A stretch of 64,000 bases of DNA, taken from positions 1 through 64,000 of the IMG/VR virus record IMGVR_UViG_3300049043_000112. One strand, written 5' to 3'. Under the pieces are notes generated by a model that was not told the origin of the DNA, did no database searches, and saw nothing but the letters and a program-made list of their open reading frames with translations. The position numbers were made by a program, and so were the translations under genes. Position 1 is the stretch's first letter; every line of letters begins with the position of its first letter. Below, piece after piece: positions 7,017 to 46,892 of the stretch.

Positions 7017-8322
7017 TTACTTCTTACTTTTTCTATACTTATTTATGAAATCAATTCCGTAAGCGACTCCACCAGGTTGAAGATTTTCTTTCCCAGTACC
7101 AACTGCTCCTGGAGTTTGTTTTGCAGCGTATTTGAAATATCCAGTAGTTCCAATTAATGTATTAGGTTTTCCAGGTTGTCTATACATTTTATCCATTTTA
7201 ACTTCAGTATATTCAACCAAATCTTTAATCCAAGATTTAAACATTTGACCAGATTCTGTTACACAGATAAGATAATTGGTACCTCTACGAATAATACGTC
7301 CTATTAATCCAGTATTTAAGTTTTCTACTTTTTCACCAAGTTTAAAAATTGTTTCTGTAAGATAATTTTCACGCAGATTTTGATAATCAAACTTTGGAGC
7401 AATTTGCCATATGTCCCAACCTTCCTTAACATTCATTGAACCACGAAGAATATTGAATAATTCTTTTGCCTCTGAAGGTTTGACTTCGGGAGGAAGACCG
7501 GATCTAAATGTTTTAAAATCTCCTTCTGCGGCAGCAAGTCTCATTCTTGATGCAGACATTCCTTCTACACCTTTTGCATCAGGGTCCCTATCGCCAGATG
7601 AAACGACTTCAATGTTATCAAAGTTATAAAGTTGTCCATTATATTGGTTAGAAAGTTTTTCAAACTCCTTGACTCTATCTGCACCACCAATAATTCTTAC
7701 ACCAGCATATCCATTATTATGTGCCATTTTGAGCACGTCAAATATAGTTTTAGTATTTGCATCATTAACAATATTTCCTGCATGATTTGGATAAAACTTT
7801 TGCATATAAGCAATCTTTGTATCGGGATCTAATGGATTCTTTTTCTTGTCCTGACTTCTTGAAGGAAAGATAAGATACTGCCCATCCTTATCCTGTGATG
7901 CTGCTTGTGCTGCAGTATCCATTAATTGTTGATGCCCAATTGTCAGGGGGATTGAAACGTCCAAAAGCAACAGTAAGAGTTCCTTTTGTTTTAGGTACAG
8001 GAAGATACTGTGCTGGCGGTTGTTCCTGGGATGCTTGTTGTTCAGGTGCTGGTGCTTGTTGTTGCGCTGCTGCTTGCTGCTGAACTAATGCTGGATCAGG
8101 TATATCCAGGAGATGCAATTGTTTTTTCTTTTTCAGTCTGTGCTGGATCTTTTCACCAACTCTCTGTCGCTTATTATAAAACTTTAATTTTCCACCTTCT
8201 GTTTTTGCTACGAATTCTCCCTGCTTATCATACCATCCACCATGACCGTCTCCAACAAGTCCAAGACGCTGTGCTTGCTGAGAGGCAGATGCTTCTGTTA
8301 TGAATTGGAAAAAACTTTTCAT
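7017..8322 (-). CDS. Cytidyltransferase-like (HxGH superfamily) nucleotidyltransferase, +1 indel near 7945
   Basis: Joining 7888..8322 and 7017..7970 restores TVAFGRFNPPTIGH; also GGADRV and MSASRMR. N-terminus is MKSFFQFITE. Confidence 0.85.
7040..7047 (-). promoter_or_regulatory. Late promoter variant CATAAATA
   Basis: 33 nt upstream of the ATG at 7007. Confidence 0.6.
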
Positions 8323-8374
8323 TATCTATTAAATATGTATCCAGTTACTCTTATATTATGTATTTATTATTATT

Positions 8375-9376
8375 TTATATCAATCCGACAAATTTACTTC
8401 TAGGAAATAGTTTAACATTTCCAGTAAGTCTAGATTTATATACGGCTTGTACTCTTAATCCTGCAAAATCTTTTCTACCTGCTAATCCTGCTGTTCTACT
8501 CGAATCTTTTCTTATTAAAATATATGGATCTTCACTAGAAGATTTTATTTGTTGTAAATTATTATACAATTTAACACAATTAACTTTTAAAATTAAATTA
8601 TTTTCATCCCAAGTAAAATGACTATCACCTGAAAATGTCTGTTTAACAATGGCACCATTCCCTAATATATCAGATCCAAATACAAAATTTGTTTTTTCAT
8701 AATCTGTAGTAGGAATGGCTATACCACTAATACCAAATCCAAAATCAACTTTGTTACCTATTCTTTTTATTTGTATTTCACCTTGCTCCTCCAGTGTTTC
8801 TAAAATAGAAACTGCTTGAGAACCATAAATTGTATCTGCAGATTCCCAAAATTCAGCAGTAGATTTTTTTAATGAAACTCTAAAAGTAGGAGCATTTAGT
8901 CTAAGCAAATTTACGTCAGATTTTTTTCTACCAGCAGTATCAGATCCAGAAGCTTCTGCAATTAAAACATTATCAACAACTACTGTTCTTCCAGATCCAG
9001 AAAAAACAACTGTTATTGTATGAAATGCTCCATATCCAGTATCAAGATATTTGTTAATTCCATTAACAAAGGCAATTTCCTTACCGATTCCAGCAGATTT
9101 ACTTCCTTGTCTAGATGCTGGTCGAGTAAAAACAATTTTATCACCAATCTGAACAACACCCAATGATGATACTTGATTTCCACCCTTACCATTTACCAAA
9201 GGTGTTTGATAACTAGGATTATAAAAAGCGCCTTTATCTTTGAATATTTCTGCAACTCTCCTCAAAACTGCTGATCTATCACCATCTGCCAATATTGCAA
9301 TACGATTTGCAGTTTTATTTTTAAAATTTATATATCCTAATTTTCTTAAAACTAATTCTATTTCAGGAATAGTCAT
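8375..9376 (-). CDS. Hypothetical protein, possible PD-(D/E)xK nuclease fold
   Basis: KKSDV-x(9)-RVSLKK resembles the D...(S/E)xK catalytic motif; AT-rich; ACTAAATA at 9401-9408. Confidence 0.5.
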   Translation of the reverse strand: MTIPEIELVLRKLGYINFKNKTANRIAILADGDRSAVLRRVAEIFKDKGAFYNPSYQTPLVNGKGGNQVSSLGVVQIGDKIVFTRPASRQGSKSAGIGKEIAFVNGINKYLDTGYGAFHTITVVFSGSGRTVVVDNVLIAEASGSDTAGRKKSDVNLLRLNAPTFRVSLKKSTAEFWESADTIYGSQAVSILETLEEQGEIQIKRIGNKVDFGFGISGIAIPTTDYEKTNFVFGSDILGNGAIVKQTFSGDSHFTWDENNLILKVNCVKLYNNLQQIKSSSEDPYILIRKDSSRTAGLAGRKDFAGLRVQAVYKSRLTGNVKLFPRSKFVGLI

Positions 9377-9407
9377 TCAAATTAAGTTAACTTTTTAAAA
9401 TATTTAG

Positions 9408-9487
9408 TGCCCAAGAGAGGACTCGAACCTCCACGCCGAAGCACATGATCCTAAGTCATGCGTGTATACCAGTTTCACCACTTGGGC
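9408..9487 (-). tRNA. tRNA-Leu (anticodon TAG), CCA not encoded
   Basis: Acceptor stem GCCCAAG/CTTGGGC, anticodon arm CATGA-CTTAGGA-TCATG, variable arm, GGTTCGAGTCC T-loop. Confidence 0.93.
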
Positions 9488-9489
9488 AA

Positions 9490-9562
9490 TGGAGATAAGG
9501 AGACTCGAACTCCTGACATCAGCCTTGCAAAGACCGCGCTCTACCAACTGAGCTATATCCCC
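9490..9562 (-). tRNA. tRNA-Ala (anticodon TGC), CCA not encoded
   Basis: GGGGATATAGCTCAGTTGGTAGAGCGC...TTTGCAA...GTTCGAGTC...ATCTCCA, 73 nt. Confidence 0.95.
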
Positions 9563-9577
9563 AATAAGACCATTATA

Positions 9578-9985
9578 TCACCGAAGTGGCATAAGGTCAA
9601 ATAATTCTGGATGAAGTTGTCCGTATTTTCTCATTAATTCACCTGCTTTTGCATTCGCCTGATTTTCTGTCGGACTACCAGCATGAGAACTCTTATGGTC
9701 AAGACCTTTCTCCATGTGTTGTTTGTAGTGAACATACTCATGAGCAAGAGTTCTTAATATATCCATAGGATGACGATTAATAATGCTCAAATGAATTACA
9801 TTTTCTTTTGAAATTTCACCAAATGCAGCAATTCGTTTAGCAAAATCTGTATCATCTACAAGAATGACTGGAATATCATAAGTGAGGCGAAGTTCTCTTT
9901 TTAAAAAGACCTGAAATTTTTTAAGAATCAAATCAAATTGAATCTTTGTAGTTGGTCTTCCTTTTCGCTTTCCAATCAAAGACAT
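9578..9985 (-). CDS. Small zinc metalloprotease-like protein (HExxH)
   Basis: RTLAHEYVHYKQ plus a downstream E..A helix (TENQANAKAG). Confidence 0.7.
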   Translation of the reverse strand: MSLIGKRKGRPTTKIQFDLILKKFQVFLKRELRLTYDIPVILVDDTDFAKRIAAFGEISKENVIHLSIINRHPMDILRTLAHEYVHYKQHMEKGLDHKSSHAGSPTENQANAKAGELMRKYGQLHPELFDLMPLR

Positions 9986-9997
9986 TTTTTAAAATAT

Positions 9998-10191
9998 TTA
10001 TTCTGGGTCAATTGCACAAGCAATTTTATCATCAAGATCGTAAATTACATTACGAATTTCGGAGATACGGGGAGGAACACTTGTTTGATTATAAGTATAT
10101 CCTTCTTGTGCATCAAAAAGAACTTGACGAACTGCTGCAGCAGAACGAAGATCCATTTCAATTTTTACTGTTAGTTCCTTTTTTTAGTCAT
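9998..10191 (-). CDS. Small hypothetical protein (homopolymer indels)
   Basis: MTKKELTVKIEMDLRSAAAVRQVL..DAQEGYTY..VPPRISEIRNVIYDLDDKI; ATGA overlap with mazG. Not in the ORF track. Confidence 0.55.
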
Positions 10192-10604
10192 CGGTCATCA
10201 GCAGCACGGTTTTCGGAGAAATAAACATCAAAAGCACCTTCAGGATAACGCTTCAGAAGTTTTTGAACATTACGGGCAACTACGTCATCAAGAGTAGTAT
10301 CGAGTGCCATACAAGCCTGGGCAACATACCACATAATATCGCCCAGTTCAATAATTAGGTGCTCACGGTTATCCTCATTAAAAGGTTTGCCCTGGAATAC
10401 CATCTTCTTAACGATTTCCATAAACTCACCACCTTCAGCGTTGATGCCAACGGCAGCAGTCAGGAGTCGTTCAATATTAGCACCTTTCTCATCCAGAGCA
10501 ACAAGACGGTCGGAGAGAGCAAGAAAGTCTTTGGATGCGTCAGACGTTACAGCATCCACAAACTCAGCGTACTTATCAAAATTAACGTGTTTAGCGGTTT
10601 CCAT
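10188..10604 (-). CDS. mazG: MazG-like NTP pyrophosphohydrolase
   Basis: GINAEGGEFMEIVKK...ELGDIMWY; usual cyanomyovirus position after gp41. Confidence 0.92.
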   Translation of the reverse strand: METAKHVNFDKYAEFVDAVTSDASKDFLALSDRLVALDEKGANIERLLTAAVGINAEGGEFMEIVKKMVFQGKPFNEDNREHLIIELGDIMWYVAQACMALDTTLDDVVARNVQKLLKRYPEGAFDVYFSENRAADDR

Positions 10605-11983
10605 TAAAATTTAAATCCTTCAAATGATTTTTTAGGTTTCTTGTCTTCGTTATCATTATACTCGTCTTCGTTGCCAGAGTCAAGTATGTCCTTCTGGGCA
10701 GTTTGCTCACAATCATACAGTCTCATCTTAGCACGGTCAATACCCACAATAAAACGCTTGTAGATCGTTGGGTCATTGTAACGGTTCTTCAACTGCTTCA
10801 CCATAATCTGTCCCAACTGTTCAAGTTCTTCAGTGCTAATAAGGGCAAACATAAGATCAGCAGTAGCAGGAAGACCAAAGGATTCGCTAGTATCAGTAAG
10901 TTCAACATCAGAACTACCATAACCTGAACGAGTGGTCTGAGTAGCGGAGACAATTGGGACATTAAACTCCACGGCGAGTCCCCTAAGTTCCTCAGCAATT
11001 GCTTTAATATACGAATATGAATTGACAGAAAGGTTTGACTTATACCTGCTGGAAGCACAAATATTGAGGTAATCAATGAAAATAATATCAGGTCTAAATG
11101 ACTTTTTGAGAGCAAGTTCATTGAGAAGTGCCTTAAAGTGCCCACTGTGTGCGGAAGCAGTGGGATACTCTTTAATTATAAGAGTTCCTTGTGTTTTCTT
11201 TGAGAGTCCTGTAACTTTGTTTTCGAATGTCGAGCGTGGGAGATCAACCAGTTGCTGAATCGGGACATTGAGAAGGTTTGCGTCAATTCTTTCTGCAATT
11301 CGCTCTTCCGCCATTTCAAGAGTGATATAGAGAACGGACCTGCCTTGCAGTAAGACGGAACTAGCCACATGACACATGAATAGCGATTTCCCAACGCCCG
11401 TCCCAGCGAGAGCGATATTGAGAGTCTTACTAGGGAGACCACCCTTCGTGATTTTGTTGAAATATTCCAGATCAAATTCGATCTTATCCTCTTTACGATG
11501 ATAAAACTCATAACGCTCCTCATAGTTTTGAAGATAATCGTGACCAATATTATTATCAAATGATACTGCTAGAGCATCAGACAGAATGGTTGGGATTGCA
11601 TCACGATTCTTCTTATCATCGTTACCATCGGCAATATGAATTGATTCCATCAATGCCAGGTAAATAGCACGGTCACGACACCATTTTTCAGTGGTATCAA
11701 GCAACCATTGCTTATCAACAGGAGAATCATTTAAAGAATTATTAATTTCTCTGACTTCTTTAATCTCCGTTTCATTTAAATCAGTTCGGTTTTCTACTTC
11801 AATATTGAGTGCTTCAATGGTAATTGCCGAACCGTATTTAACAATAAATTGAACGATTTCTTCAAAAATGACCTTTTCCGACTTTTGCTCAAAATAACTT
11901 GGTTGTATAAAAGGTATGACCTTGCGGGAATAATCTTCATTGAATACTAAGTTCCTTAAAATAGTTGTCTCAATTCTTTCCAT
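10604..11983 (-). CDS. gp41: Replicative DNA helicase
   Basis: Walker A AGTGVGKS, IFIDYL, SATQTTRSG, KQLKNRY. True start is MERIE at 11983. Confidence 0.96.
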   Translation of the reverse strand: MERIETTILRNLVFNEDYSRKVIPFIQPSYFEQKSEKVIFEEIVQFIVKYGSAITIEALNIEVENRTDLNETEIKEVREINNSLNDSPVDKQWLLDTTEKWCRDRAIYLALMESIHIADGNDDKKNRDAIPTILSDALAVSFDNNIGHDYLQNYEERYEFYHRKEDKIEFDLEYFNKITKGGLPSKTLNIALAGTGVGKSLFMCHVASSVLLQGRSVLYITLEMAEERIAERIDANLLNVPIQQLVDLPRSTFENKVTGLSKKTQGTLIIKEYPTASAHSGHFKALLNELALKKSFRPDIIFIDYLNICASSRYKSNLSVNSYSYIKAIAEELRGLAVEFNVPIVSATQTTRSGYGSSDVELTDTSESFGLPATADLMFALISTEELEQLGQIMVKQLKNRYNDPTIYKRFIVGIDRAKMRLYDCEQTAQKDILDSGNEDEYNDNEDKKPKKSFEGFKF

Positions 11984-12540
11984 TATTTGTAATGTAGATA
12001 TGCGGTCATGATATACTTTGGTCCACTCATAGGTGGTTCTCCACGATGGGGATACATCCAAAGTGGTGGAAACATTATTAGTGTTCCTTTTTTAGGTTGA
12101 ACTTCGAAATCTTTAAAGACTGTTTTACCTCCACTTCCAACATCATTCAAATACCACATAAAAGACAAAAATCTTCTAGCAGTATCATACGTCACAACAT
12201 CAACGTGTGTATCAAATTAATCTTTGCCACCAGGATTATACTTTTTTATACGAAATTGTTCAAGAGCATGTTCTTCTGGAAAGACACGCTTATCAACATA
12301 TTCATAATACTTATCCCGATATTCAAATATCTTTTTAATGATATGACTATGAACTTGTTTGACTTCAGGAGTTAATTCCTTATGCTCAGTTAAATTAAAC
12401 TGAGTAAAATTAGGTTTACCATCATTATCATATCGTTCGTGTTTATCTGATGTTTGTTCAAAGAGTGAAATTAAAAAATCACAGACTTCTGGTTCTAACC
12501 CATCTTCATAGACGTGAATTAAATCATTAAGTTCAACCAT
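11983..12540 (-). CDS. 2OG-Fe(II) oxygenase (prolyl-hydroxylase-like), in-frame TAA at 12217-12219
   Basis: Read-through gives D*FDTHVD (HxD) ... LSFMWYLNDV..GG.T...PPLWMYPHRG...KY; both track pieces are in the same frame. Confidence 0.88.
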
Positions 12541-16975: not shown

Positions 16976-17134
16976 TTATTCTTCCTTTCCCTTTCCACCA
17001 CCACCAGGATTAAATGGAACTGCCTTACCAGCAGGAACATTCTGAACTTTTCCTTTCATATAAACCTTATGCGCTTTTGCCATAGGGTACTTAATGGTTT
17101 TTATTTCATTAAGAAAGTGGGCGAAAGTTTTCAT
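16976..17134 (-). CDS. 52-aa basic peptide with capsid-targeting-like N-terminus
   Basis: MKTFAHFLNEIKTIKYPMAKAHKVYMKGKVQNVPAGKAVPFNPGGGGKGKEE*; TCTAAATA at 17146-17153. Not in the ORF track. Confidence 0.7.
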   Translation of the reverse strand: MKTFAHFLNEIKTIKYPMAKAHKVYMKGKVQNVPAGKAVPFNPGGGGKGKEE

Positions 17135-23927: not shown

Positions 23928-24143
23928 CTATTTTTTCTTTTTAGAAGTTGATGGAGAAACACTTCTCTCAAAGGGTGTACCTTCCTGAACTAATCCGTCA
24001 CCATCACGATCTGTAGCATTTGGATTATATCCAATTGCTTTTGATTCTGATGATGAAGCAGCAACTGGTGATGGTGCAGTAGGAGCAGCAGGAGATGGTG
24101 CTTCCACTATTGATTCTTCAATTAAATCTGAAAATCTACTCAT
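23928..24143 (-). CDS. 71-aa late peptide with a DxDxDG loop
   Basis: MSRFSDLIEE, Pro/Ala linker, ATDRDGDGLVQEGTPFER, basic tail; GATAAATA at 24168-24175. Confidence 0.7.
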   Translation of the reverse strand: MSRFSDLIEESIVEAPSPAAPTAPSPVAASSSESKAIGYNPNATDRDGDGLVQEGTPFERSVSPSTSKKKK

Positions 24144-34006: not shown

Positions 34007-34627
34007 TTAATACCTTCCGTACATTAAACCCTTACTTTGTGTAACTGGAAAGAGTGGTTTAGTTTTTGTCATTGCAGGTTTTGGTGCATTACGGACATAA
34101 ACTTTTTGTTTACCAAATTCTTGCGATGTAATATTTGATTTTCCAGAAACATCTCTTGCAGTTTGTAATGCAAGATCATAACTTGTTGATTTATTATAAG
34201 ATCCAGCAGGTCCAAAATTACCAGTATCTTGTGCAGAAGTTGTTGCAATTGGTGCTTTTGTTCCTGGTGCCTTTGTCATTTGAAGTTTGGTTCCAAATGG
34301 TATAGATGGTTTAGTACTTGTCTTAGATGCATAAGGTACAGCAACTAATTTTTGTTTATCATCAAACTTTGCACCACTTGCAGTTAATGATCCAGGAGTA
34401 TCTACCTTACTATAAGAACTTACATTGACTGGTTTCCAACCATAACGTTGTTGTTCTGCACTAGTATGTGCTCTTTGAGTGAATTTTCCAGATGATTTAT
34501 CTAATACACCAGGTTGGTAGTTCTTATATGCAAGAACTTGTTGAGATTGTGGTTTTTGTTCTTTATCAAATCTCTAAAACTCTCTTATCTCATATGCTTC
34601 CAAACAAAACTGCTTATATGGTTTCAT
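34007..34627 (-). CDS. RlpA-like double-psi beta-barrel (lytic transglycosylase-like) protein with capsid-targeting-like N-terminus; in-frame TAG at 34574-34576
   Basis: A single frame 34627 to 34007: MKPYKQFCLE...VSSYS...TASGAKFD...VAVP...IPFGTKLQMT...AQDTG...SYDLA...FGKQKVYV. The track shows only the last 90 aa. Confidence 0.7.
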
Positions 34628-34647: not shown

Positions 34648-34655
34648 TATTTAGA
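34648..34655 (-). promoter_or_regulatory. Late promoter variant TCTAAATA
   Basis: Immediately after the gp23 terminator, 21 nt upstream of the ATG at 34627. Confidence 0.65.
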
Positions 34656-34656
34656 T

Positions 34657-34680
34657 AAAAAAGAGGGTCCGAAGACCCTC
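34657..34680 (-). terminator. gp23 terminator
   Basis: GAGGGTC-TTCG-GACCCTC-TTTTTT. Confidence 0.9.
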
Positions 34681-34701: not shown

Positions 34702-36105
34702 TCACATAAGGTTAGCAACTTTAACTCTTCTGTAGTAGACGTTAGCGTTGGTTGTAAGAGCACCAGCACCTGCGGTAAGACCCTCTGCGAATGGGTTAGC
34801 AACCATTCCATAACGGGTCTTAAATCCAATCTTAGGCTGGAAGGTATTCTCACCAACTGCACGTACCATCTGGAGAGGTACGTATGGGCAGTAGAAGAGA
34901 CCAGCATCATAAGGTGAAGAACCCTTGTATCCAACAACGTAGAACTGGTTAGCAGCAACGTTTGCCGAATATGGATCAATATAAACTCTATACTTACCTT
35001 GGAGAACACCAGCGAAGGTGTTGCCAGTGTCATCAACGTTCAAGTTAGCGTTGAGTGCAGGGGTGTAATCGAGAACACCAGCCATTGCAAGTGCCGAAGC
35101 AACGTCAGCAGAGCAAAGGATCGTGTTACCCTTCCCTCTACGAGTTTGTTGGGCGATTGCGTTTGCATCACGCTCGATCTGGAAGATCAGACCCTTGAAC
35201 TTCTCAACCGACCAACGACCGTTGGAGTCAACGTCAAGGTCAAAAGTACCAGCGGTAGCAGTGTTGACCTGAGCACCAGGCTTAGCAATCTTGTAGATTG
35301 TTCTGATGACTTCACGGTTGATTTCAGCAAGAATCTCAGTGCTGAGGATGTTAGCAAGCTCAGCTTCTGCATTCAGACCGTGAATTGCCTTCAGGTCTTG
35401 TGCGAGCTCGAGTGAGTACTCAGCTTTCAGAGCACGTGACTTAGCGGTTACAGTGACTTTCTCGATCGAGAACGCCATCTGGTTGAACTGATCAGATTCA
35501 CCTAATGATTCTGCCTCATCAGTTCTCATTCCCTGACCAACGTTATACTGGTTAGCACCAGTTGCAGCGTTGTTTGCTTGGTTTGAACCATCAAGGATTG
35601 ATGGGTTTGTACCACCTTGAGCAGTAGTACCCATACCAACAGTACCGTCGGTCCAGCCATTGGTATTGTTGAAACCACTATCTTGACCAGAGAATGCGGA
35701 ATCTACTTCGTTATAGAAGGTTTCAGATCCACTCTGAGTCTTATAGCGTGAACGCATTGCGAAGATAAGTCCAGTAGGACCATTCATTGGTTGAACGCCA
35801 CACAGATCGTAAGCGATCAGGTTAGGCATTGAACGGCGAATAAGGGAGATTAGTACAGGGTCGAAACCTTGTAGTGCTCCAGTTGATGCGCCACTTAGAC
35901 CAGTTCCAGTTCCAGTTGAAGTGCTGGTGAAGTTGGTTGGTGCTTCGTAGAGAAACTCACGCTCTTCGCGGATAGTTTTCTCTTGGTTTTCAAGCAGGAT
36001 AGCAGTTACCGCTCTACGATGTGAATCTTTGATTTCATCGAGACCTGAGTAGTCCAGAATTGGTGCCCACTTCTCCTGCAGTTGTTCAGTGTTGTACATC
36101 TGCAT
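34702..36105 (-). CDS. gp23: Major capsid protein
   Basis: EKWAPIL, FDPVLISLIRR, GVQPMNGPTGLIF, KSRALKAEYSLELAQDL, GFKTRYG. Confidence 0.98.
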   Translation of the reverse strand: MQMYNTEQLQEKWAPILDYSGLDEIKDSHRRAVTAILLENQEKTIREEREFLYEAPTNFTSTSTGTGTGLSGASTGALQGFDPVLISLIRRSMPNLIAYDLCGVQPMNGPTGLIFAMRSRYKTQSGSETFYNEVDSAFSGQDSGFNNTNGWTDGTVGMGTTAQGGTNPSILDGSNQANNAATGANQYNVGQGMRTDEAESLGESDQFNQMAFSIEKVTVTAKSRALKAEYSLELAQDLKAIHGLNAEAELANILSTEILAEINREVIRTIYKIAKPGAQVNTATAGTFDLDVDSNGRWSVEKFKGLIFQIERDANAIAQQTRRGKGNTILCSADVASALAMAGVLDYTPALNANLNVDDTGNTFAGVLQGKYRVYIDPYSANVAANQFYVVGYKGSSPYDAGLFYCPYVPLQMVRAVGENTFQPKIGFKTRYGMVANPFAEGLTAGAGALTTNANVYYRRVKVANLM

Positions 36106-36154: not shown

Positions 36155-37323
36155 TCACTTTTTGGCGACTCTTGTAAGAGTTTGAAGATATGCTTCCATA
36201 ATTGGGGAGACAGACTTAACTTCTCCTTCTTGTGAGGCATCTTCAGACAGACTTTCGGAGTCATCTTTTTGAGTACCAGTATTTGTTGGGAAATATGATT
36301 CCCTCAGAGTTACCAGTTTCTCACGATAGTTTGCTTCACTATCAAACTCAACATTTTCTGCAAGAGAAGCGAGTTTGTCCTTCTGAGAAAGTGCAAGACC
36401 CTCAGCGACATCTGCAAAGATTACATCAGCAACTGACTCTGCTAATCTTCTATTGAGAGCAACGTTTCTTTCGATTTGCTCGTTGAGTTTTTCTTCCATT
36501 TCATCAAGTTTATCTACCATACTCTCGATAACATCATATCTATCTTCAGGGATTGTTACATAATGATCTTCAAAAAGACTCTTCATTCCGGCAAGGAATG
36601 ATTCTGTCATTTCAGTCTTAAGACCGTGCTCAACTGCGAGTGCATTTTCTTGGATCCACTCGTCAGCAACATACTCAAGGTAAGCATCAACTCTGTCGGT
36701 CAGGCTTTCCTTGATTGCTTCGATTTCTTCTACAAGGGTCTGCTCATAAGCAGATTGTAGAGATTCTTTAATTTCAGCAACCTTAGATTTGATTGCTGCT
36801 TCGAAGATGGTACGGCTTTCTCTTCAAATTCTTCAGAAAGCTCTTCACCTGCAAGAAGGGCATTGACATCTTCTTCGATATCAAACTCTTCTTCCATTTT
36901 CTTTTTACCTTTCTTTTTACCACCTTCTTCTTCCTCTTCCTCTTCTTCCTCCTCTTCTTCTTCCTCTTCTTCCTTGGCTTCGGTTACTTCCTCTTCACCA
37001 TCTTCTAGTTCTTCTTCATCCTCTACTTCTACGAGTTCTTCTTCATCCTCAACTTCTTCTTTAGCAACAGATTGCATTGGTTCAGCAGCTGCTGCCTTTG
37101 CATTAACTACATTCTTTACTTGAGCAAGAGTTTTGCCTGGAGTATTGAGATGTGCTGACTCGTCATCTGGACGATAATTTTCCGGAGTTGGACCACCTAA
37201 ATCTTCCCAAGCGCCAGTTTGTCCTGGAGTAATAGATCCAGTACCGGATTGCATTGGTTCGGCAGGTGCAGCCCCTTTGGTTACTACGTTTTCCATTTCT
37301 TGTAAATTTCTACCAACGGACAT
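36155..37323 (-). CDS. gp22: Prohead core scaffold protein, -1 indel near 36815
   Basis: LSEEFEEKA(RTIFEAAIKSKV...DRVDAYLEYVADEW...EMTESFLAGMK); long acidic tract. Confidence 0.92.
36900..37060 (-). repeat. GAA/GAG low-complexity tract encoding poly-Glu in gp22
   Basis: EEEEEEEEEEEEEE followed by GGKKKGKKK. Confidence 0.8.
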
Positions 37324-37363: not shown

Positions 37364-38014
37364 TTATAGATTTGAAAGAAATTCTTGGAACAATTGTACT
37401 TTATGTTCCTGTAGAACTTTTTCATCAACTAGCGTATTTATTCTACGCTTAGTTGATTCTGCCAATCTTTCACGAAGAATTCCTCCTTCCCAGACCCATT
37501 CCTTTCCTTCCATAATTCCTGAAACAAATGCATCAGGGGCAGAAGGATCGGCAACGATATCTGCTGCTGTTGCAAGCATAAAATCTTCACCAACAATTTT
37601 GCAACCACTGTGATCCTCTTTTAAAGAACCAACACCACGAGAGGAAACTCCAAGAGTAACCCCTTCATCAATTAGGGATGAAGCAATTTTACCCATTGGG
37701 GTGGATAAAAGTTGTGCTTTACCAATAAAATTACTTCCATCTTGATAAAGTTCGCAAATTTTATGAGATACTCTATCAAGATTTACGGTTGGTCCATCAG
37801 GGTGCCCAAGTTCACCAAGAGCACGACCTTTAGCAATGAAAGATTCGGCATATCTCTTAACCTCTTTAGAAAGAGTGTCTAAAGGATACATTCTTCCATT
37901 ACGATTTTTGATGTTTCCTTGGAGAAAAACACCTTTGATATACATTTTTTTGCCGGAACCCTTACCTTCGGTAATAAATTCTACCTTTTGAATTTCTTCT
38001 GTGATGAGTTTCAT
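37364..38014 (-). CDS. gp21: Prohead protease
   Basis: MKLITE, GELGHP, LDRVSH, GVSSRG, DIVADPSAP. Confidence 0.96.
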   Translation of the reverse strand: MKLITEEIQKVEFITEGKGSGKKMYIKGVFLQGNIKNRNGRMYPLDTLSKEVKRYAESFIAKGRALGELGHPDGPTVNLDRVSHKICELYQDGSNFIGKAQLLSTPMGKIASSLIDEGVTLGVSSRGVGSLKEDHSGCKIVGEDFMLATAADIVADPSAPDAFVSGIMEGKEWVWEGGILRERLAESTKRRINTLVDEKVLQEHKVQLFQEFLSNL

Positions 38015-38016
38015 TT

Positions 38017-38756: not shown

Positions 38757-40453
38757 TTATATCTTACCACCTTTGGGTTCCTGTGGAATTTCTGTAGGTG
38801 CGGGTGCTGCTGGTTCTGCTGGAACTTCACCTAATGCTGGTTGTTCTCCTACTGCTCCTTCTGGTGGAACTCCTTCTGGTGGAATTGGATTTCCCATTTC
38901 ATCAACGGGAGCATTAGGATCTGGAAGAATACCTTTTTCAATTTCATCATCAATCTGTTGATCAATTTCAATAATTTCAGAATCTGTTTGGCGAAGAATT
39001 TTTTTACGAACATACTCTGTAGAATAATATTTTCCAATATAAGGTTCAACTTGTGTCATCAATGAAATACGGTTTGTTAAAATTTCTGCTTCCTTTAGTT
39101 CTGCAAAATGATTATCATATAAGAAGTCATATTGAATATGATCCTCCATCCTTTCCCAATCTTCTGGAGAAACAATATTCTTCAAAAGAAGTTGAGTACG
39201 GAGCATATCATTAAACATATTCGAAAAACGCTTTCTAAGTCTCCCTACAAACTTAGAAAACTTAAGTTCATCTCTTAAAATTTCAGATGAACGTCCAAGA
39301 TTAAACCCATCTCCTCCACCAGCAATTCTTGTTTCTGGAACTCCAAGTGCTCTATAAAGTTTCTTTTGAAAATATTCAATATCTGCAAGTTCACCAAGGT
39401 TTTGACCACCAGGTAAGGTTGTAATCTCGGTTCCTCTACCACCTCTCTTCTTGGAAGCCAAAAATCTTCCAGCATCGCCATATATTTGCGATCATCACGA
39501 ATTTCTCCAGTATTTGCATCATAAACAAGTTTATTACGATAACGACTCATCACTTCTTTAAGATATTGCTCTGCTTTTACTTTAGGAAGATTGCCAACAT
39601 CGATATAGAAAATTCTTCTTTCTGGAGCACGTGATAATCTGTAGATAACCAGAGAATCTTCAATCATTCTTAACTGGTTAAGTGCTTTAATCGCTTTATG
39701 AAGATATGAAAGTACAGTTCCTTTATTTCTATCTACAAGTCCAGAAGTGCAATAAGTAATTGAATCTTTTGCAATTTTAAGTGATCCTTTTGCTGCTCCA
39801 CTCAAAGAACCCATGGGATAATTTGGTGCTGGAGAATAAATGAAATATTCTTCAACATCAGAATAACTCATTTCTGAGTTAGTAAGATTTGCATTTGCGG
39901 TTAAAGTACTTACGATTGGTTGTCCATTTTTGCCGTTCGTCTTTACCTCTTGACGAACATGCTTCATTTTCATTGGATCAATGTATCTGATTTCTTTTAT
40001 ACCTTCTTGTGGTTTTTTAGTATCAATAACTTTCAAGTAATATAATCTACCATCAACATACCAATTCCTAAAAATTTCATGACACTTTCTATCAAAGTCC
40101 ATCATCTCTTTGATGGACTTAAATTCATCACGAATTGCTTTTTTGAGTTTATCGCTAGCATTTAAATTTGATAATTCAATTTCAACTGGAGAATCATAAA
40201 GATCACTTACAAGGGCTTCGTTTACAACATCTTCAATCGCAGCATCACACTCCGGATGTAATGCCATTTCACGATAACGACGCATTAAATCAAACTCAGT
40301 TCTATAGACACCTTCAATATCTACATACTGACCGTAGAATCCAGATTGAATATAATAATCAACCCCGTCCTCATCTGTCTGAGGAACGGGGGATACTATA
40401 GATTTGGATTTTTCCTCTGTATCTTCAATCGAAAAACCAAAAAGTTTCGCCAT
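38757..40453 (-). CDS. gp20: Portal vertex protein, -1 indel near 39447
   Basis: MAKLFGFSI, YRLSRAPERRIFYIDVGNLP, LEDFWLPRR(EGGRGTEITTLPGG). Confidence 0.96.
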
Positions 40454-40484
40454 TTTATAAATTTAAACGTTTAATATCTACTAT

Positions 40485-41075
40485 TTAGTTAATGTCCTTA
40501 CCGCCTGCAGCAGGAGAAGTTCCTTTAACTGCTTCCCACCAAAGAACTTGCATTTCTACTGTGAATTCCTGAATCGAATCTGTGCCATAATCTAAAGGAA
40601 TGTTGCTGATATTTGTTGGGAAAATATCATAGAAATGATATGCTCTTAGAGTGGTTCCATCACGATTTAACTGATAAACAAAAGCATCTGCCTGATATGC
40701 AGCAGGATCAGTAGCACCCGTGTTATCAGAAACTCGATTAATTGCATTCATCCACTTTTCAAAAGCAGAACGAATTGCAAAATCAGTGTCATTAATAACA
40801 CCAATTGTCCAAGATTCGAATGTACGATCTCCAGCAAGTTTTAGAGTTCTTCCACGGAAAGAAACTTCAAGTGGAGTAACGCTAGATGCTGGAAGAGCCG
40901 CAGACTTTACTAAGAATCTTGCTTTATCCAGAGTATTAACATCTGCGGGCGCAATGTCAGGGAATGAAAGAACAACTTCGAAAAGATTACTTCTTGTGCC
41001 GCCACCAGTTAACTTACTTTTGAAGTCAGTAATCTTCCTTAAAGGAGGTGGATTTAATTGCTGTCTGGTTGCCAT
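40485..41075 (-). CDS. gp19: Tail tube protein
   Basis: RSNLFEV, FRGRTLKLAGDRTF..W, FPTNIS, IQEFTV. Confidence 0.95.
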   Translation of the reverse strand: MATRQQLNPPPLRKITDFKSKLTGGGTRSNLFEVVLSFPDIAPADVNTLDKARFLVKSAALPASSVTPLEVSFRGRTLKLAGDRTFESWTIGVINDTDFAIRSAFEKWMNAINRVSDNTGATDPAAYQADAFVYQLNRDGTTLRAYHFYDIFPTNISNIPLDYGTDSIQEFTVEMQVLWWEAVKGTSPAAGGKDIN

Positions 41076-41094
41076 AGTTTTTTAAACCTCTAAA

Positions 41095-43248
41095 TTAAAA
41101 GTTTCCGATTACTTCTTCAAAATCAACACCAGTTTTGGTGGCGACAAAGTTCAGTCCAATGAAGTTAATTGATCTTGCTGGTTTAATGAAGATATCAGCT
41201 CTGAATTCATTACTATCTATCACTGCAGCAGTATTATTTGTTTCATCGCAAATTACAACATAATCAAAAATACCTCTCTTAGATTGAACATCACGGAGGA
41301 AAGGTTCAATTGTATTTACGAAGTTTGTTCTGGTAATTTCATCATTGAATTCAAAGAGTGCATCTTTTGCTGCCTGTGAAATTGCATTTTCAAGATAAAC
41401 AAAGAGGCGACGAACGTTGATTCTATCGAATGCAGATGCCTTAGCAAGTCCAGTCTTATCACCGAATAGAATAATACCAGATCCAGGTGAGAAGACTACT
41501 GGATTAATTCTATTGGAATATAAAGTATCTCTTTGAGATTTTGTTGGATTATATGCAAGTTTAACTGCATTTAGAATAGCACCTCTGGTGGTTCCTGCTG
41601 GCGAATACCAAGGGAAGTTGTTGATATCATTGCGGGCACAGAGACCTGCCATATCCCCATTTAGAGGAACATATCTAAACGTGTTTGCAAATCTATCGTA
41701 CATGTACTTATAACCACTATCAAATACTGCATAAGAAGATGAGGTGACTGGTGCATAGAATGAAATAACATTCGTAGTAATATCACTTGAAGAACGAACT
41801 GCTACTGCACCTTGACTAGTGGTATCAGTTAATGCGGCACCTCTATAAGGTGAAACAAATGCTAAAGCATCTTTTCTGAGTTCAGCAACCGAAATAATTT
41901 TATTAGCAAGAGCCTGAGCAGTTTCTTTAGCATATGCTGCAGAACCCATCAGTAAGAAATCTACAGTATAATTATCGGTTGATTCGAATAAATCATATCC
42001 GTCCGATAATTCTCCAAGAGACGCTGTGAGAGCACCTGTTGATGCTACACCTACTATTCCACCATAGTCTGCACCTTTAGATAAAATATTGGTTGATGAA
42101 CCAGTTGCAGCAAAAATAACTCCGTCTGCTGCTTGGTCCCAAGCATTATCTGTTGCGGGTGTATAATTGTTAGCAAATCCTGTCGTTACAATTCCTGTTG
42201 GAGATCCAAGACCAAAGATATAACTTGAATTATTTGCTAAGTATTTTCTCCAGTTTGAAGGATTACCTACAGAGAACTCGGCATCAGATGCTTTGGAGAG
42301 AGATAAGTGCTTTTCAAGAATTGTTCCAGCATTTCCACTAACCGTTCCTAGTCCATCAATAACTACAACGTGAACTTCATCAAATCTTGAACCTCTTGAT
42401 GAAGCATAAGCAGAAGTTCCAGGAGCTGGAGCAATATCACTCCAATTAATATTAGAACTTGTTGTCACCCCAATTGTTTGCTGACTAAACCAGTCTACAC
42501 GAGTAGAAACTGTTGTTGTTGCAACACCAACGGCGCTATTAGTTAAAATAGAAATATTTTGATTGGTATAGAAACTATAAATTCCACTTTGTTGGTAATC
42601 TACATTTGTTTCTGTCCCTCCAGCAGAAACATGACTTAAAACTTTAACATCTAGTGTTCCCTCTCCAACTCTAGTGATAATACCTTTTAGATAACCATCT
42701 AGAATTGAAGTAGAACCAGCTCCAGGATTAATTCTTCCAGAAACTGATTGTGAAACTCCATAACCAACCACAGCACCAGTCGTTGTAAGTCCAAGAGTTT
42801 GATTTGCTTTAGAGTCGATAATTGCAACTCTAAGACCATTAGACCACGAACCAGGATTTCTTGCAGCAACTACAACATTAGCAAGAGTATTTTCATCATA
42901 ACCTAAAAGATTATAATGCTCTAAACTATCAATTTTCACGCTTGCAGCAGATCCTACCATTCCATTGACTAGACCACCATCATTTGCTCTTACTACTCTG
43001 AGTGATCCACCATAAGCAAGAAACGATGATGCGGTTAACCAATTCTCATAATGCTTATCTGTTGCATAAGGTTGTCCAAAGGTGTTTAGTAAATCATTTT
43101 CATTTTGTACCAAAGTTGGTACGTCTACAGGTCCTCTAGCAAAAGGTGATACAATCGCTCCAGTTTTATTGGATGATGGAGCAACTCTTCCGAGTGTTAA
43201 ATCAAATTCCTTTACTACAATTCCAGGAGATGCTAAATTTAGCGGCAT
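41095..43248 (-). CDS. gp18: Tail sheath protein
   Basis: LASPGIVVKE, WYSPAG..RG, FDRINVRRLF, PARSINFI. Confidence 0.96.
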   Translation of the reverse strand: MPLNLASPGIVVKEFDLTLGRVAPSSNKTGAIVSPFARGPVDVPTLVQNENDLLNTFGQPYATDKHYENWLTASSFLAYGGSLRVVRANDGGLVNGMVGSAASVKIDSLEHYNLLGYDENTLANVVVAARNPGSWSNGLRVAIIDSKANQTLGLTTTGAVVGYGVSQSVSGRINPGAGSTSILDGYLKGIITRVGEGTLDVKVLSHVSAGGTETNVDYQQSGIYSFYTNQNISILTNSAVGVATTTVSTRVDWFSQQTIGVTTSSNINWSDIAPAPGTSAYASSRGSRFDEVHVVVIDGLGTVSGNAGTILEKHLSLSKASDAEFSVGNPSNWRKYLANNSSYIFGLGSPTGIVTTGFANNYTPATDNAWDQAADGVIFAATGSSTNILSKGADYGGIVGVASTGALTASLGELSDGYDLFESTDNYTVDFLLMGSAAYAKETAQALANKIISVAELRKDALAFVSPYRGAALTDTTSQGAVAVRSSSDITTNVISFYAPVTSSSYAVFDSGYKYMYDRFANTFRYVPLNGDMAGLCARNDINNFPWYSPAGTTRGAILNAVKLAYNPTKSQRDTLYSNRINPVVFSPGSGIILFGDKTGLAKASAFDRINVRRLFVYLENAISQAAKDALFEFNDEITRTNFVNTIEPFLRDVQSKRGIFDYVVICDETNNTAAVIDSNEFRADIFIKPARSINFIGLNFVATKTGVDFEEVIGNF

Positions 43249-43284
43249 CTTTATTCTCCGTGCTATCCAGAATTATTCTAGAAA

Positions 43285-43292
43285 TATTTATG
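43285..43292 (-). promoter_or_regulatory. Late promoter variant CATAAATA
   Basis: Upstream of gp18. Confidence 0.6.
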
Positions 43293-43331
43293 AAAATGGT
43301 TATTTTAATTGGGGAAACGCTGCGTGAATAT

Positions 43332-43559
43332 CTACCAATCAGGATATTGCCATTCACTTGAATATGCTTTGGTCTTTTTAGACTCTTGAATTCTCTTAAT
43401 GGTACATTCTTTACATTCATATGAGTATGATGAAAGAAGTGTATTATTTTTTCTTGTTTTATAAAAACTATCTATTAAATTTTTTCTTTCTTTGCAAACT
43501 CTACAACGACTATCAGTAAAAAATAAATGTTCTACTTCAAACTGTTCTTCTAAGTCCAT
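43332..43559 (-). CDS. Small zinc-ribbon protein
   Basis: CRVC...CKEC, ending WQYPDW. Confidence 0.7.
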   Translation of the reverse strand: MDLEEQFEVEHLFFTDSRCRVCKERKNLIDSFYKTRKNNTLLSSYSYECKECTIKRIQESKKTKAYSSEWQYPDW

Positions 43560-45258
43560 TTAACGATAATCCCACATATAAGAACGATCACCATATTCAT
43601 CTAAATTCCAAACATCAGTTGTTTGCACTCCATTTTCTTTTGTTGCAAACATCCATCTATCTCCAGTTTCTTTTTCTATAATATCATCCATATCTTCAAA
43701 TCCATCAGAAATAAATCCAAATGGGGACATATCTTGTTCTATCTGATTTTTTTGTTCTTCATAAATTCTTTTACGAACATCATTGTCCGTCATCTCTTTG
43801 AAATAATCCTGAGCAACTAACCAAGAGAAAATTACAAGACACATTGCTAAGTCATCATTACAACCTTCTTCTGCTTCAAATGAATTATGACGTTGTGCAA
43901 ATGTAGTAAGTTCTGATATAATATCATAATCAACTGTTAATAACTTATCATCTTCTAGTAATGTTTTTAAATTAGAGCATCCTAATTTCTTAACAGATGC
44001 AGTCATTCTTACGCCCAATTGAGATTTCTTTCCACTAAATCCAGAACCAACCAATTGACCAGCTCGTCCTCTTATTGCACACATTAAAACATTATCATAC
44101 TCTAAATCAAAGTGCATAATATTTGCTACTTGATTCTCCAATATCATTAACTTCTATTAATAACCAAGCATCATTGTAACCTCTTGCTACTTCGTTAATA
44201 ATACTTGGAAATAGCATGGGTTTAATTTCGTTATTGCGATATTTTGCTACAACTTTATACGGAAAGTTTGTAATATCAAAAACAATAAATGCAGAGTAGT
44301 CATTTCCAAGTCCACGAGCAACATCAACTGTCATCAAGTAGTTGTGTTCTTCAATTGGATTTTCATAAATGTCTAAACCAGCGTTTCTCTTAATTGGGTC
44401 TTCATAAACAAGATTTCTAAGTTTTGCTGGATTAATCAGCGTATTAACAGAACCTAAGAATTCACATTCAAATTCTACCTTGAATTGTTGTTCTGAAGTG
44501 TTTGCAATTGTCTGTTCTTTCCAGACAGCATCTCTACCAGGCACTTCAGACCAATGAACATCAGTCGGTACATATTCATTTTTACCGCGTTCGGAATCAT
44601 GCCACATGCGGTAAAAATGGTTCATACCACGTGGTGTTGAAACTATGATGACTTTTGTGCTTTGTCCAGAAGAAATAGTAGGATAAACAGAGGCAAAGAA
44701 GTCATCAGCAATGTGATTCGGGATGAAAGCGAACTCGTCAAGAAAGATGACATTATAGGATCCGCCTCGGACAGCAGACGAAGAAGTAGAGTTAGATGAA
44801 ATCTTGGAGCCATTTTCTAATTCCAACGATCCTTTGTTCCAGGATATAATACCCTGTTGCATCCACTTTGGTAAATTCTATAAGCAAGTTGTAGTCTCCC
44901 AAGTAGGTCTCTAGCAGTAGATGCTTTGTTTGCTAGAATAGCTATATTTACATTATCATTAAATACCGCATAATGTAACAAATATGAAACGCAAGTTGTA
45001 GATTTACCCGTTTGGCGGGGCATCTTACAAATATTAAATCTGTTCTTATGGAAATTATGAATTAGTTTCTCTTGAAACGGATACATCTCTAAAAGGAACA
45101 AGACCGTGATCCAGAGAAACAATTTTAATGTAGTTTCTCGCAAAATAAACAGGATCTTCTTTACACTTTAAGAACTCGATAATTTGTTCTTCAGTGAATT
45201 GGATTTGCGTATTTGCTTTTTTTAAATTTGGATTACCAAGATATACATTATCACTCAT
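43560..45258 (-). CDS. gp17: Terminase large subunit, three indels (~45090, ~44880, ~44135)
   Basis: MPRQTGKSTT, IFLDEFAF, STPRG, VDVARG, DDLAM, spread over four track pieces. Confidence 0.96.
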
Positions 45259-45263
45259 AAAAA

Positions 45264-46577
45264 TTACCTACTAATTTCTTCCCAGTCTAGTGAAGCAAAA
45301 ACATCAGCACCAGCAGTATCGGATGCAACTACTAGTGTTAATTCATAAGCAGTTCCAGTCAGTCCATTTCTTTCTAATTGAAACTTAAATAATGCTTCTT
45401 TTAGAATATCAACAGATGAGGAAGATTGGTTTGCTGATGAGAAAAATCCAGATGCTAGAATTCTTCCACCACTTACAGTTCCTCCATCAATTTTATATTC
45501 CACAGCACTATCAGCGCCCGCACTTACCCAAGTACCACCACTAGTAGTTGCAGATGCTCTTACCTGCCAGTTATATTGTGGACCATTTCCAGTACCCATC
45601 AAGGAAAGTGCTGTCAAAATAACAATTGCATCTAATCTATTTGGAGAAGATTTTAGACGAATAGAAATAACGGGATAATAAGTCCCTGCAGGAGTTGGTA
45701 AATCTACTGGTGCTGTGATTGGAGTATTTACTGCTTGTTGCAATCCACGCAATTCATAACCACCTTCCGAAATTACAGAAGAACACACCTGTTTCATAGT
45801 ACTACTACCTGTAGTAATACCAGTATTTGCAATCTCATATCTTAAAGGAAGAGATGCTGTTGTAATATAAGTTGATTGGATATAGTTTGCGTGATGGAAT
45901 GAATGTGCGTGAATAAACTTCCCATCAATCACAAATCCCATTCTTACTGTACCAAGACCCAACCACTTAATATCCATCCAAAGAATTTGTGCTTTGGTGA
46001 TATCTAATGTAATACCAGAAACCCCAGTACCATCTAACTTATCAATATTCCAATCATTTTGTGCAACTGAGGTTTGAGTACCAGTAGATAAACTTCTTTC
46101 TACAAAGTAAGGTGTTGTATTATTGATTTCAAAATACATTCCATTATCAGCACCAAAATATCCTACTCTTTGACGAAGGTTTTGTTTTGGTGTAGCGGGA
46201 ACAAAGGTATTTAAAACAAGTAAAGATTTGCCTGGTTGATATGAGAATGTCTTTGTGGTCTCTCTAATTACAGAGCAACCAGCAGTAGTTCCAATACCAA
46301 TATTAATTAATCCTTCAGTAGTTGCAAATCCAACTGTAGAACCAGTTCCTACAACTAAACTTTCCCAGAGATTATTGTCTCTATATCTGTGAGAACTATC
46401 AAATAATGTAAGTGGATTTGATACTCTTGTTCTTCCAAAAGCATCTGGATTTACACTTACAGGAAATCTATTGATATTATCTACAACATTTCCATCCCTT
46501 GTCGCTATCAAAGGAACTTCAAAGAGTGTACGCTCTTGATTCAAATAATCTTGAGTATTCTTATTCCACTGTGCCAT
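45264..46577 (-). CDS. Hypothetical protein, probably structural (beta-rich)
   Basis: DAFGRTRVSNPLTLFDS, YQPGKSL, QRVGYF, WLGLGTVRMGF. Confidence 0.65.
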   Translation of the reverse strand: MAQWNKNTQDYLNQERTLFEVPLIATRDGNVVDNINRFPVSVNPDAFGRTRVSNPLTLFDSSHRYRDNNLWESLVVGTGSTVGFATTEGLINIGIGTTAGCSVIRETTKTFSYQPGKSLLVLNTFVPATPKQNLRQRVGYFGADNGMYFEINNTTPYFVERSLSTGTQTSVAQNDWNIDKLDGTGVSGITLDITKAQILWMDIKWLGLGTVRMGFVIDGKFIHAHSFHHANYIQSTYITTASLPLRYEIANTGITTGSSTMKQVCSSVISEGGYELRGLQQAVNTPITAPVDLPTPAGTYYPVISIRLKSSPNRLDAIVILTALSLMGTGNGPQYNWQVRASATTSGGTWVSAGADSAVEYKIDGGTVSGGRILASGFFSSANQSSSSVDILKEALFKFQLERNGLTGTAYELTLVVASDTAGADVFASLDWEEISR

Positions 46578-46580
46578 GAA

Positions 46581-46892
46581 TTATTCACCCCAGGATAATC
46601 TTTCTGGTCTGTATCTTTCTGTATTTTTAATCTTTAATGGATTGGTTGAATTTGGATAAACGTTATGGACAATGGCACCTGGATACTCTGCTTGAAGTTG
46701 TTCTGCAAGTGCGTTCTTATCCATCATTTTTCCTTCAACTTCCATACGATAAAGTCTTCCTTGCCAAACTATATCAGCAAGAAAAGATTCAGTTGCAGTT
46801 TCTTGTTGGGATGAAGAATTCATATAAAGATTTCCGTTGAAATCTCCAGAAATGTTGATACTTTCTGAAATAAATTGTTGAAAGGATTTCAT
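46581..46892 (-). CDS. Hypothetical protein with capsid-targeting-like N-terminus
   Basis: MKSFQQFISE then a globular domain (ADIVWQG...YPGAIVHNVYP). Confidence 0.7.
   Translation of the reverse strand: MKSFQQFISESINISGDFNGNLYMNSSSQQETATESFLADIVWQGRLYRMEVEGKMMDKNALAEQLQAEYPGAIVHNVYPNSTNPLKIKNTERYRPERLSWGE

Follow-up and report, generated by a model that had tools for sequence, protein, structure and literature searches.

The DNA analysed here is a stretch of 64,000 nucleotides (the window) from the IMG/VR contig IMGVR_UViG_3300049043_000112 (236 kb), a T4-like cyanomyovirus with 36% G+C. The nearest isolate is the freshwater Synechococcus phage S-SRM01, with ~84% nucleotide identity across gp23/gp22. 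Almost all genes of the window are carried on the minus strand. Four of these minus-strand open reading frames (ORFs), starting at 8322, 17134, 34627 and 46892, open with a ten-residue leader of the form M-K-[S/T/P]-[F/Y]-x-x-F-[I/L/C]-x-E, which resembles the capsid targeting sequence (CTS) of the phage T4 internal proteins. All four leaders have Phe or Tyr at position 4, Phe at position 7, Ile, Leu or Cys at position 8 and Glu at position 10. According to Pfam and PHROG searches, the four carriers belong to different families. The carriers, the head-assembly genes of the window and further features are listed in Table 1.

A search of the window with the pattern K.[FYW]..F[ILVMC].[ED] gave six six-frame matches, four of them immediately after a start Met. 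In comparison, 200 dinucleotide-preserving shuffles of the window gave a mean of 0.92 matches, with 0.005 preceded by Met. The pattern was derived from the window matches themselves; hence, the control was extended to sequence outside its definition. In a set of ~490 kb in total (the window, the S-SM1 genome, 100 kb of S-CREM2, 100 kb of T4 and 50 kb of S-SCSM1), the true register gave nine N-terminal matches in 349 ORFs starting with Met-Lys, whereas each of nine altered patterns (Glu or the aromatic residue moved, spacing changed or residues exchanged) had 0-1 matches. The four decapeptides with Glu at position 10 that a preliminary description of this DNA had reported are all present at their starts on the minus strand, and their N-terminal enrichment was borne out against both kinds of control. 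Comparison of the cytidylyltransferase orthologues in IMG/VR showed that the leader codons vary synonymously (TCT, TCC, TCA or AGT for Ser, TTT or TTC for Phe) while the residues are fixed; at position 8 the codons are ATT/ATA versus TTA/CTA. Because the codons change synonymously while the leader residues stay, selection appears to act on the peptide rather than on the DNA or mRNA. By eye, the four window leaders are alike in nucleotide sequence only as far as their codons require.

According to a review of T4 head assembly (PMC9026906), IPIII needs no more than its first ten residues to enter the head. Residues 4 and 7 are the main determinants of targeting, residues 8 and 10 govern processing, an Asp at position 10 prevents processing yet leaves targeting intact, and CTS-packaged proteins are carried into the infected cell. 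The conserved positions of the cyanophage leaders (4, 7, 8 and 10) are these functional positions. Applied to 100 kb of T4, the window pattern gave four six-frame matches, and the only two preceded by Met are those of ipIII and ipII. Both presumed partners of such a leader, a gp21-type prohead protease and a gp22-type scaffolding core, are encoded in the window. The gp22 piece at 36155-36610 matches T4_CASP (PF25623, E=4e-45), and the piece at 36730-37323 gave no Pfam match. The N-terminus of the window gp21 holds E-F-I-T-E at residues 12-16. The gp23 site takes the form F-L-Y-E/A in the window, F-L-T-E/A in T4, where it is the known cleavage point, and L-L-T-E/A in S-CREM2 (the slash marks the known or presumed cut). 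The window site also has the same form as leader positions 7-11. As judged from sequence, the resemblance to the T4 internal proteins seems limited to the leader. PHROG and Pfam searches assigned the cargos to a cytidyltransferase family, phrog_1742, DUF6321, DUF5661 or no family and labelled none of them as an internal protein, a direct comparison with the T4 internal protein sequences not being part of these searches.

Table 1. Coordinates of the leaders, their carriers and other features in the window.
Feature	Coordinates	Strand	Remarks
Leader MKSFFQFITE	8293..8322	-	cytidylyltransferase / NMNAT-like gene
Leader MKTFAHFLNE	17105..17134	-	52-residue protein gene
Leader MKPYKQFCLE	34598..34627	-	~206-codon gene after gp23
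Leader MKSFQQFISE	46863..46892	-	103-residue protein gene
Cytidylyltransferase / NMNAT-like gene	7017..8322	-	phrog_395, E=6e-88
Second N-terminal module, A..QQA.RLGL.GDGHGGWYD..GEFVAKTE.G.LKFYNKRQ	8149..8292	-	from orthologue alignment
ATAAATA late-promoter-like box	8361..8367	-	45 nt upstream of cytidylyltransferase start
52-residue Gly/Lys-rich protein gene	16976..17134	-	directly downstream of hsp20
71-residue ORF starting MSRFSDLIEE	23928..24143	-	ATAAATA at -31; weak candidate, not counted as a member
~206-codon gene directly downstream of gp23	34007..34627	-	in-frame TAG at 34574-34576 (codon 18)
TAAATA box	34648..34653	-	26 nt ahead of the start at 34627, just past the terminator-like hairpin of gp23
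103-residue protein, structural gene block	46581..46892	-	phrog_1742, E=6e-38
209-residue protein with C-terminal DUF6321	46894..47523	-	PF19846, E=8e-15
Internal leader-like site NKTFSQFMED, residues 116-125 of the 209-residue protein	47149..47178	-	just before DUF6321
315-residue DUF5661 protein	47537..48484	-	PF18905
Degenerate internal leader-like stretch of the 315-residue protein	48236-48265	-	residues 74-83
gp21-type prohead protease	37364..38014	-	Peptidase_S77 (PF03420), E=9e-35; presumed processing enzyme
gp22-type scaffolding core, two ORF pieces	36155..37323	-	presumed docking partner
gp23 F-L-Y-E (residues 51-54), then Ala	35944..35955	-	likely maturation cleavage site
Split portal gp20	38757-39218 / 39275-40453		two ORFs
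Split phrog_3326 virion-locus gene	5516-7007		two ORFs

Leader-bearing proteins recur in published virion proteomes. In purified S-SM1 virions, a putative cytidylyltransferase (T4-GC190) was detected with 25 peptide counts, a level similar to those of gp6 and gp22 (Sullivan et al. 2010). This cytidylyltransferase, starting with MKKFSAFLNE, is the sole Met-preceded match of the pattern in the whole S-SM1 genome. The authors of the S-SCSM1 study found an NMNAT-like protein in virions and remarked on the repeated finding of such proteins in cyanophage virion proteomes. They proposed no mechanism and left open whether these are carried or are contaminants; the S-SCSM1 NMNAT starts with MKSFLQFLKE. 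The virion proteome of S-CREM2 holds 52 of the 221 proteins of the phage. In the whole 175-kb S-CREM2 genome, the strict pattern has three six-frame matches, all of which are N-termini of virion-detected non-structural proteins: the SAM hydrolase gp6 (MKDFDSFLEE), the kinase gp14 (KRFDAFLTE after a GTG start) and the cytidylyltransferase gp154 (MKNFSSFLTE). A looser pattern adds the hypothetical proteins gp13 (MKDLHSFLTE) and gp136 (MQTFSMFFSE), both also detected in virions. All five leader carriers are therefore in the virion proteome, against 52/221 overall (P ~6e-4, by arithmetic from these counts). In the Cas9-like nuclease gp12 of S-CREM2, likewise detected in virions, a leader-like stretch follows a 15-residue extension. 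S-CRM01 virions are cited as containing a kinase; in this phage, the homologue of the S-CREM2 virion kinase is g130, which opens with MISFDQFLSE, and its neighbour opens with MKKLDQFLTE.

The two kinases lie in a syntenic block of a small protein, the kinase, a second small protein and the Cas9-like nuclease (S-CREM2 gp12-gp15, L088 7704-13331; S-CRM01 g128-g131, L296). In S-CREM2 all four products were detected in virions, and the N-terminus of each is leader-like, whether in complete, shortened or internal form. The 15-residue extension ahead of the leader-like stretch of the nuclease is conserved. The text of the S-CREM2 paper uses neither 'N-terminal' nor 'N-terminus', and 'signal' and 'motif' have one unrelated occurrence each. 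The preliminary description knew of no account of such a system in cyanophages, and a full-text literature search likewise returned no description of a T4-type targeting leader in cyanophages.

The breadth of the leader was estimated in an IMG/VR sample obtained with one codon-restricted version of the motif, which gave at least 85 matches in at least 80 loci; the counts below are among the matches listed. About 80 of the 85 can be taken as true starts, since a stop codon lies a few codons ahead of them and a long ORF follows, and they represent a dozen or more unrelated leader-bearing families. Pfam searches confirmed a HicA_toxin protein with DUF6321, a GNAT acetyltransferase and DUF6267 proteins as carriers. 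By eye, the carriers further include cytidylyltransferases with or without the second module, the 103- and 52-residue families, basic proteins of ~190 residues and DUF5661-like proteins. One of the ~190-residue basic proteins starts with MKTFQEFIAE, a single residue off the T4 CTS. Because 59 of the 80 listed loci share proteins with the 64-kb window, mostly T4-like core genes, the leader appears to belong largely to aquatic T4-like phages. In one locus (L250 12007-12630) the leader-bearing protein is a HicA_toxin domain fused to DUF6321. In another (L216 3736-4529) a GNAT acetyltransferase stands beside a protein with a Y-H-G-T ... S-T-S pattern, which had no Pfam match and resembles an ADP-ribosyltransferase motif by eye only.

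The cytidylyltransferase gene is core to cyanomyoviruses. The window copy consists of two ORFs (7888-8322 and 7017-7922), with a frameshift near 7922 in the catalytic domain. In comparison, the gene is unbroken in ~50 distinct orthologues from IMG/VR, whose products of 400-480 residues start with MK[STN]F.QF[ILF].E and are laid out as leader, second conserved module, low-complexity linker and catalytic domain. A profile search with the leader and this second module (the RLGL module) returned 660 representative clusters, almost all matched at residues 1-58, and most of the module-matching clusters that were checked are cytidyltransferases. The profile was therefore rejected as a route to many cargo types, the module being largely a one-family feature. 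The RLGL module also stands behind the leaders of the S-CREM2 kinase gp14 and Cas9-like nuclease gp12. Side by side with these, the module (~45 residues) was seen in the S-CRM01 virion kinase and Cas9-like nuclease. It might serve as a second element for packaging or for binding the scaffold.

Several features of the surrounding loci were observed in passing. In S-SM1 (146446-151332) and S-SCSM1 (86357-91835), the cytidylyltransferase gene lies within a small cluster apart from the main structural module, and every product of the cluster was detected in virions. The gene arrangement around the window cytidylyltransferase (5516-9376) resembles this cluster, which looks like an 'internal protein locus'. 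Genes for tRNA-Leu (anticodon TAG) and tRNA-Ala (TGC) adjoin the window locus at 9407-9563. In S-SKS1 (HQ633071, ~71985-73234; L094 3001-4250), a leader and module ORF begins with MKSFFQFLFE where no coding sequence is annotated, and its frame breaks ahead of the expected position of the catalytic domain. Possibly this is a cytidylyltransferase gene that was missed in annotation or is frameshifted.

The ORF starting at 34627 has 17 codons before an in-frame TAG, after which the same frame is open to 34007. Homologues in DSL-LC03 and S-PRM1 are intact and occupy the same place after gp23, with the leaders MKSFNQFCKD and KTFNQFREE (the latter after a GTG start). By eye, the position of the TAG is Trp in both relatives. 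No amber-suppressor tRNA for this codon was found in the window, where tRNA-Leu(tag) and tRNA-Ala(tgc) are the only tRNAs. Pfam and PHROG searches of the piece after the TAG gave no match. Of the cargo types proposed in the preliminary description, the nucleotidyltransferase agrees with the phrog_395 match of the 8322 gene, whereas the 'cell-wall enzyme' label of the 34627 gene goes back to an unconfirmed by-eye resemblance. In DSL-LC03, the annotated start of the post-gp23 gene (L092 1306-1989) is a GTG overlapping the capsid gene; the true start is likely the internal Met of the leader. A G+C-rich hairpin with a T-run, resembling an intrinsic terminator, follows directly after the gp23 stop in the window (~34655-34680) and is in turn followed by the TAAATA box and the 34627 gene.

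Homologues of the 103-residue protein occur in 135 phage records, and the number of protein clusters that contain them is at least 1556. Its leader (M1, K2, S3, F4, F7, S9 and E10) is invariant in 80 related loci and the family alignment. An AlphaFold2 model predicts residues 1-32 to be disordered with a short helix at residues 4-8, followed by a confident alpha/beta domain at residues 35-103. This predicted layout of a short helix, a disordered linker and a folded domain is as would be expected of a removable tag. A Foldseek search of the model (m8b1f46c8c355) against the PDB gave nothing significant, T7 Gp2 (E=0.17) ranking first and Dmd (E=1.6) next. These non-significant structural neighbours (T7 Gp2 and T4/RB69 Dmd) are small phage inhibitors of host proteins, and the predicted likeness is a lead at most. 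The gene abuts its upstream gene and has no promoter box of its own.

The two genes next to it keep leader-like stretches where their parts join. In the 209-residue protein, the internal KTFSQFME near 47160 that the preliminary description had pointed out is present, as NKTFSQFMED at 47178-47149, but as a degenerate match. PHROG families of ~100-140 residues (phrog_4689 and phrog_11180) align approximately from this site onward. By eye, an IMG/VR contig (L230) encodes a homologue of the N-terminal part of the 209-residue protein with a true N-terminal leader. DUF6321 is also the C-terminal domain of the leader-bearing HicA-domain protein (L250). Similarly, separate leader-starting proteins (L184, L182 and L228) resemble by eye the DUF5661 N-terminal part or the middle part of the 315-residue protein. 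The junction stretches are compatible with internal processing of these proteins.

Homologues of the 52-residue protein with the same leader are encoded on three IMG/VR contigs (L201, L232 and L248), and a fourth (L242) encodes a more distant small leader-bearing relative. In all four, the gene directly follows an ORF that ends like the window hsp20, and matches to hsp20 and regA were found in four loci of the IMG/VR sample. A tblastn search of the 52-residue protein against isolate phage genomes gave no match, its homologues being found only in the IMG/VR sample. The 71-residue ORF at 24143, offered earlier as a weaker member of the family, could not be told from chance and was rejected as a leader carrier: a relaxed pattern that fits MSRFSDLIEE also matches the UvsX N-terminus and non-coding ORFs.

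Of the ATAAATA heptamers in the window, 22 are on the coding strand and one is on the other. Of the reported TAAATA boxes within ~45 nt of the starts at 8322, 17134 and 34627, all were recovered, at -44, -17 and -26, respectively. Of 43 distinct upstream regions of orthologues, 18 have the box of the cytidylyltransferase gene, at -45 to -49. Among the IMG/VR matches listed, TAAATA lies at most 80 nt upstream in 46% of the leader ORFs versus 22% of other ORFs, with a peak at -30 to -20. Because it runs into the stop codon of hsp20, the gene before it, the box at 17134 is weak evidence for a promoter. The idea of a 'promoter + CTS cassette' is therefore partly supported: it fits the boxes at 8322 and 34627, but 46892 has none and the leaders are unlike in DNA. 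A mobile unit of promoter and leader DNA was rejected, since the leaders have no nucleotide identity beyond their codons, one gene is boxless and one box overlaps a stop codon.

Several core genes of the window are found in two ORFs each, namely the portal gp20, gp22, the phrog_3326 gene and the cytidylyltransferase. Because a viable phage requires an intact portal, the contig probably has indel errors. Since many core genes are broken, the frameshift of the cytidylyltransferase and the TAG of the post-gp23 gene are most simply sequencing or assembly errors as well. Frameshifts and stops in the window should not be taken as biology without the reads.

Taken as a whole, the decapeptide is probably the cyanophage counterpart of the T4 CTS, which would dock its cargo on the scaffold, be trimmed by gp21 and leave the cargo in the head. 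The leader-bearing proteins, in the window the NMNAT-like cytidylyltransferase, the 103-residue alpha/beta protein, the 52-residue Gly/Lys-rich peptide and the ~206-residue post-gp23 protein, would be made late in infection. The leader would dock them on the gp22-type scaffolding core during prohead assembly, with the aromatic residues 4 and 7 making the contact. The gp21-type protease would then cut after Glu10, reading the hydrophobic residue 8 and Glu10 in the manner of the F-L-x-E/A site of gp23. The trimmed cargo would stay in the DNA-filled head and probably exit with the DNA at the next infection. Of the head-packaged, injected effector system put forward in the preliminary description, the CTS-like packaging part agrees with the match of the leaders to the functional T4 positions and with the homologues of the carriers found in virions, but the injected-effector part is carried over from T4.

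Several observations weigh against this assignment. Cleavage after Glu10 and ejection are taken from T4 by analogy, and scaffold docking and any early-acting function of the cargo we infer in the same manner. Among homologues of the 34627 gene, that of DSL-LC03 has Asp instead of Glu at position 10, and position 8 is Arg in that of S-PRM1. The older proteomes of S-PM2 and Syn9 did not detect the cytidylyltransferase. In S-SCSM1, the homologue of the 103-residue protein, gp030 (MKTFKQFMSE), was not listed among the virion proteins, unlike the products of both adjacent genes; the negative counts for little because its sequence, as read here, yields few tryptic peptides suited to mass spectrometry. 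Two of the four leader carriers are broken in the assembly, as are the portal and gp22, which limits statements on this particular genome. Finally, the proteome papers themselves warn that late proteins made in large amounts might be carried along when virions are purified.

That caution, given as possible contamination in two of the papers, underlies a quite improbable alternative, in which the carriers merely co-purify as abundant late proteins and the shared N-terminus reflects efficient initiation of translation, through Met-Lys and early codons rich in A/T, or an unrelated N-terminal helix. Met-Lys is indeed the commonest N-terminal dipeptide, as the number of such starts in the ~490-kb set illustrates. 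However, an effect on initiation fails to explain F4, F7, I/L8 and E10 in exact register, given the 0-1 matches of the shifted patterns, and it does not account for residues that are conserved through synonymous codon change or for a pattern that picks T4 ipII and ipIII. The complete recovery of the S-CREM2 carriers in the proteome, low-abundance ones included, is hard to credit to contamination alone. A similarity due to chance or to A/T-rich composition is still further from the data, with a negligible probability: the motif has few residues and its definition came from matches already seen, but the shuffles, the register control and the recurrence of the pattern in genomes outside its definition already refute this explanation, and the pattern is conserved across hundreds of orthologues.

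It is also unlikely, if less so, that the leader is a true targeting and processing signal whose cargo acts inside the head only and is not delivered to the next host. Several carriers are small and basic or Gly/Lys-rich, like DNA-associated internal proteins, the basic C-terminal module DUF6321 recurs on carriers, and the 103-residue and DUF5661/DUF6321 genes lie inside the structural gene block. The ejection of leader proteins, moreover, is a prediction. On the other hand, many carriers are enzymes with no obvious job in the head (NMNAT-like proteins, SAM hydrolase, kinase, GNAT and HicA-domain proteins), and the CTS-packaged proteins of T4 do reach the infected cell (PMC9026906).

T4-like cyanophages are among the most abundant viruses of oceans and lakes. 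A leader on virion enzymes would offer a mechanism for the recurrent, unexplained detection of such proteins in cyanophage proteomes. It would also give a sequence-only rule for packaged and probably injected proteins in genomes and metagenomes, with a short list of early-acting candidates, and might be usable as a delivery tag in cyanophage engineering, as the CTS is in T4. More tentatively, and with some doubt, Kyanoviridae and other aquatic T4-like phages may load a large and fast-changing set of enzymes for co-injection as first-strike takeover or anti-defence factors, and some multi-domain virion proteins may be polyproteins cut at internal leader-like sites. If so, the set would comprise NMNAT-like proteins, SAM hydrolase, kinases, the Cas9-like nuclease, HicA-domain, GNAT and DUF6267 proteins and small basic proteins, and a ten-residue motif would predict injected proteins from sequence alone in ocean and lake viromes.

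Comparisons with known systems place the leader closest to T4. In the giant phages phiKZ, 201phi2-1 and SPN3US, head proteins are also trimmed after Glu by a gp21-like protease and then ejected; however, their propeptides are long and varied, are cut after S/A-x-E and have no short common decapeptide. The propeptides of T4 Alt, IPI, gp67 and gp68 share hydrophobic residues followed by Glu near the N-terminus, to which the window gp21 is comparable, and gp21 cuts them after L/I-x-E, but they are longer or looser than the strict decapeptide. In the window, a relaxed leader pattern of the Alt kind also matches UvsX and short non-coding ORFs and was rejected for this lack of specificity. The non-structural proteins reported from cyanophage virions are the same proteins as the leader-bearing ORFs of S-SM1, S-SCSM1, S-CREM2 and S-CRM01; these reports differ in giving presence only, with contamination left open. 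With the CTS of T4 IPIII and IPII (MKTYQEFIAE in the T4 record), the cyanophage leader shares the ten-residue length, the N-terminal Met-Lys, the aromatic residue 4, Phe7, Ile/Leu8 and Glu10, the presence of gp21, gp22 and gp23, and its occurrence on otherwise unrelated proteins, several of which were detected in virions of related cyanophages. The differences are that the phages here are Kyanoviridae rather than Straboviridae, that the cyanophage cargo is much more varied and often enzymatic, that in some cyanophage proteins the leader is followed by a second conserved module or their domains are separated by leader-like sites, and that leader cleavage and ejection are predictions for cyanophages. 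The central reading, in which CTS-like leaders mark head-packaged proteins, is well supported, and it would extend the known T4 mechanism to the Kyanoviridae and to a wide range of cargo.

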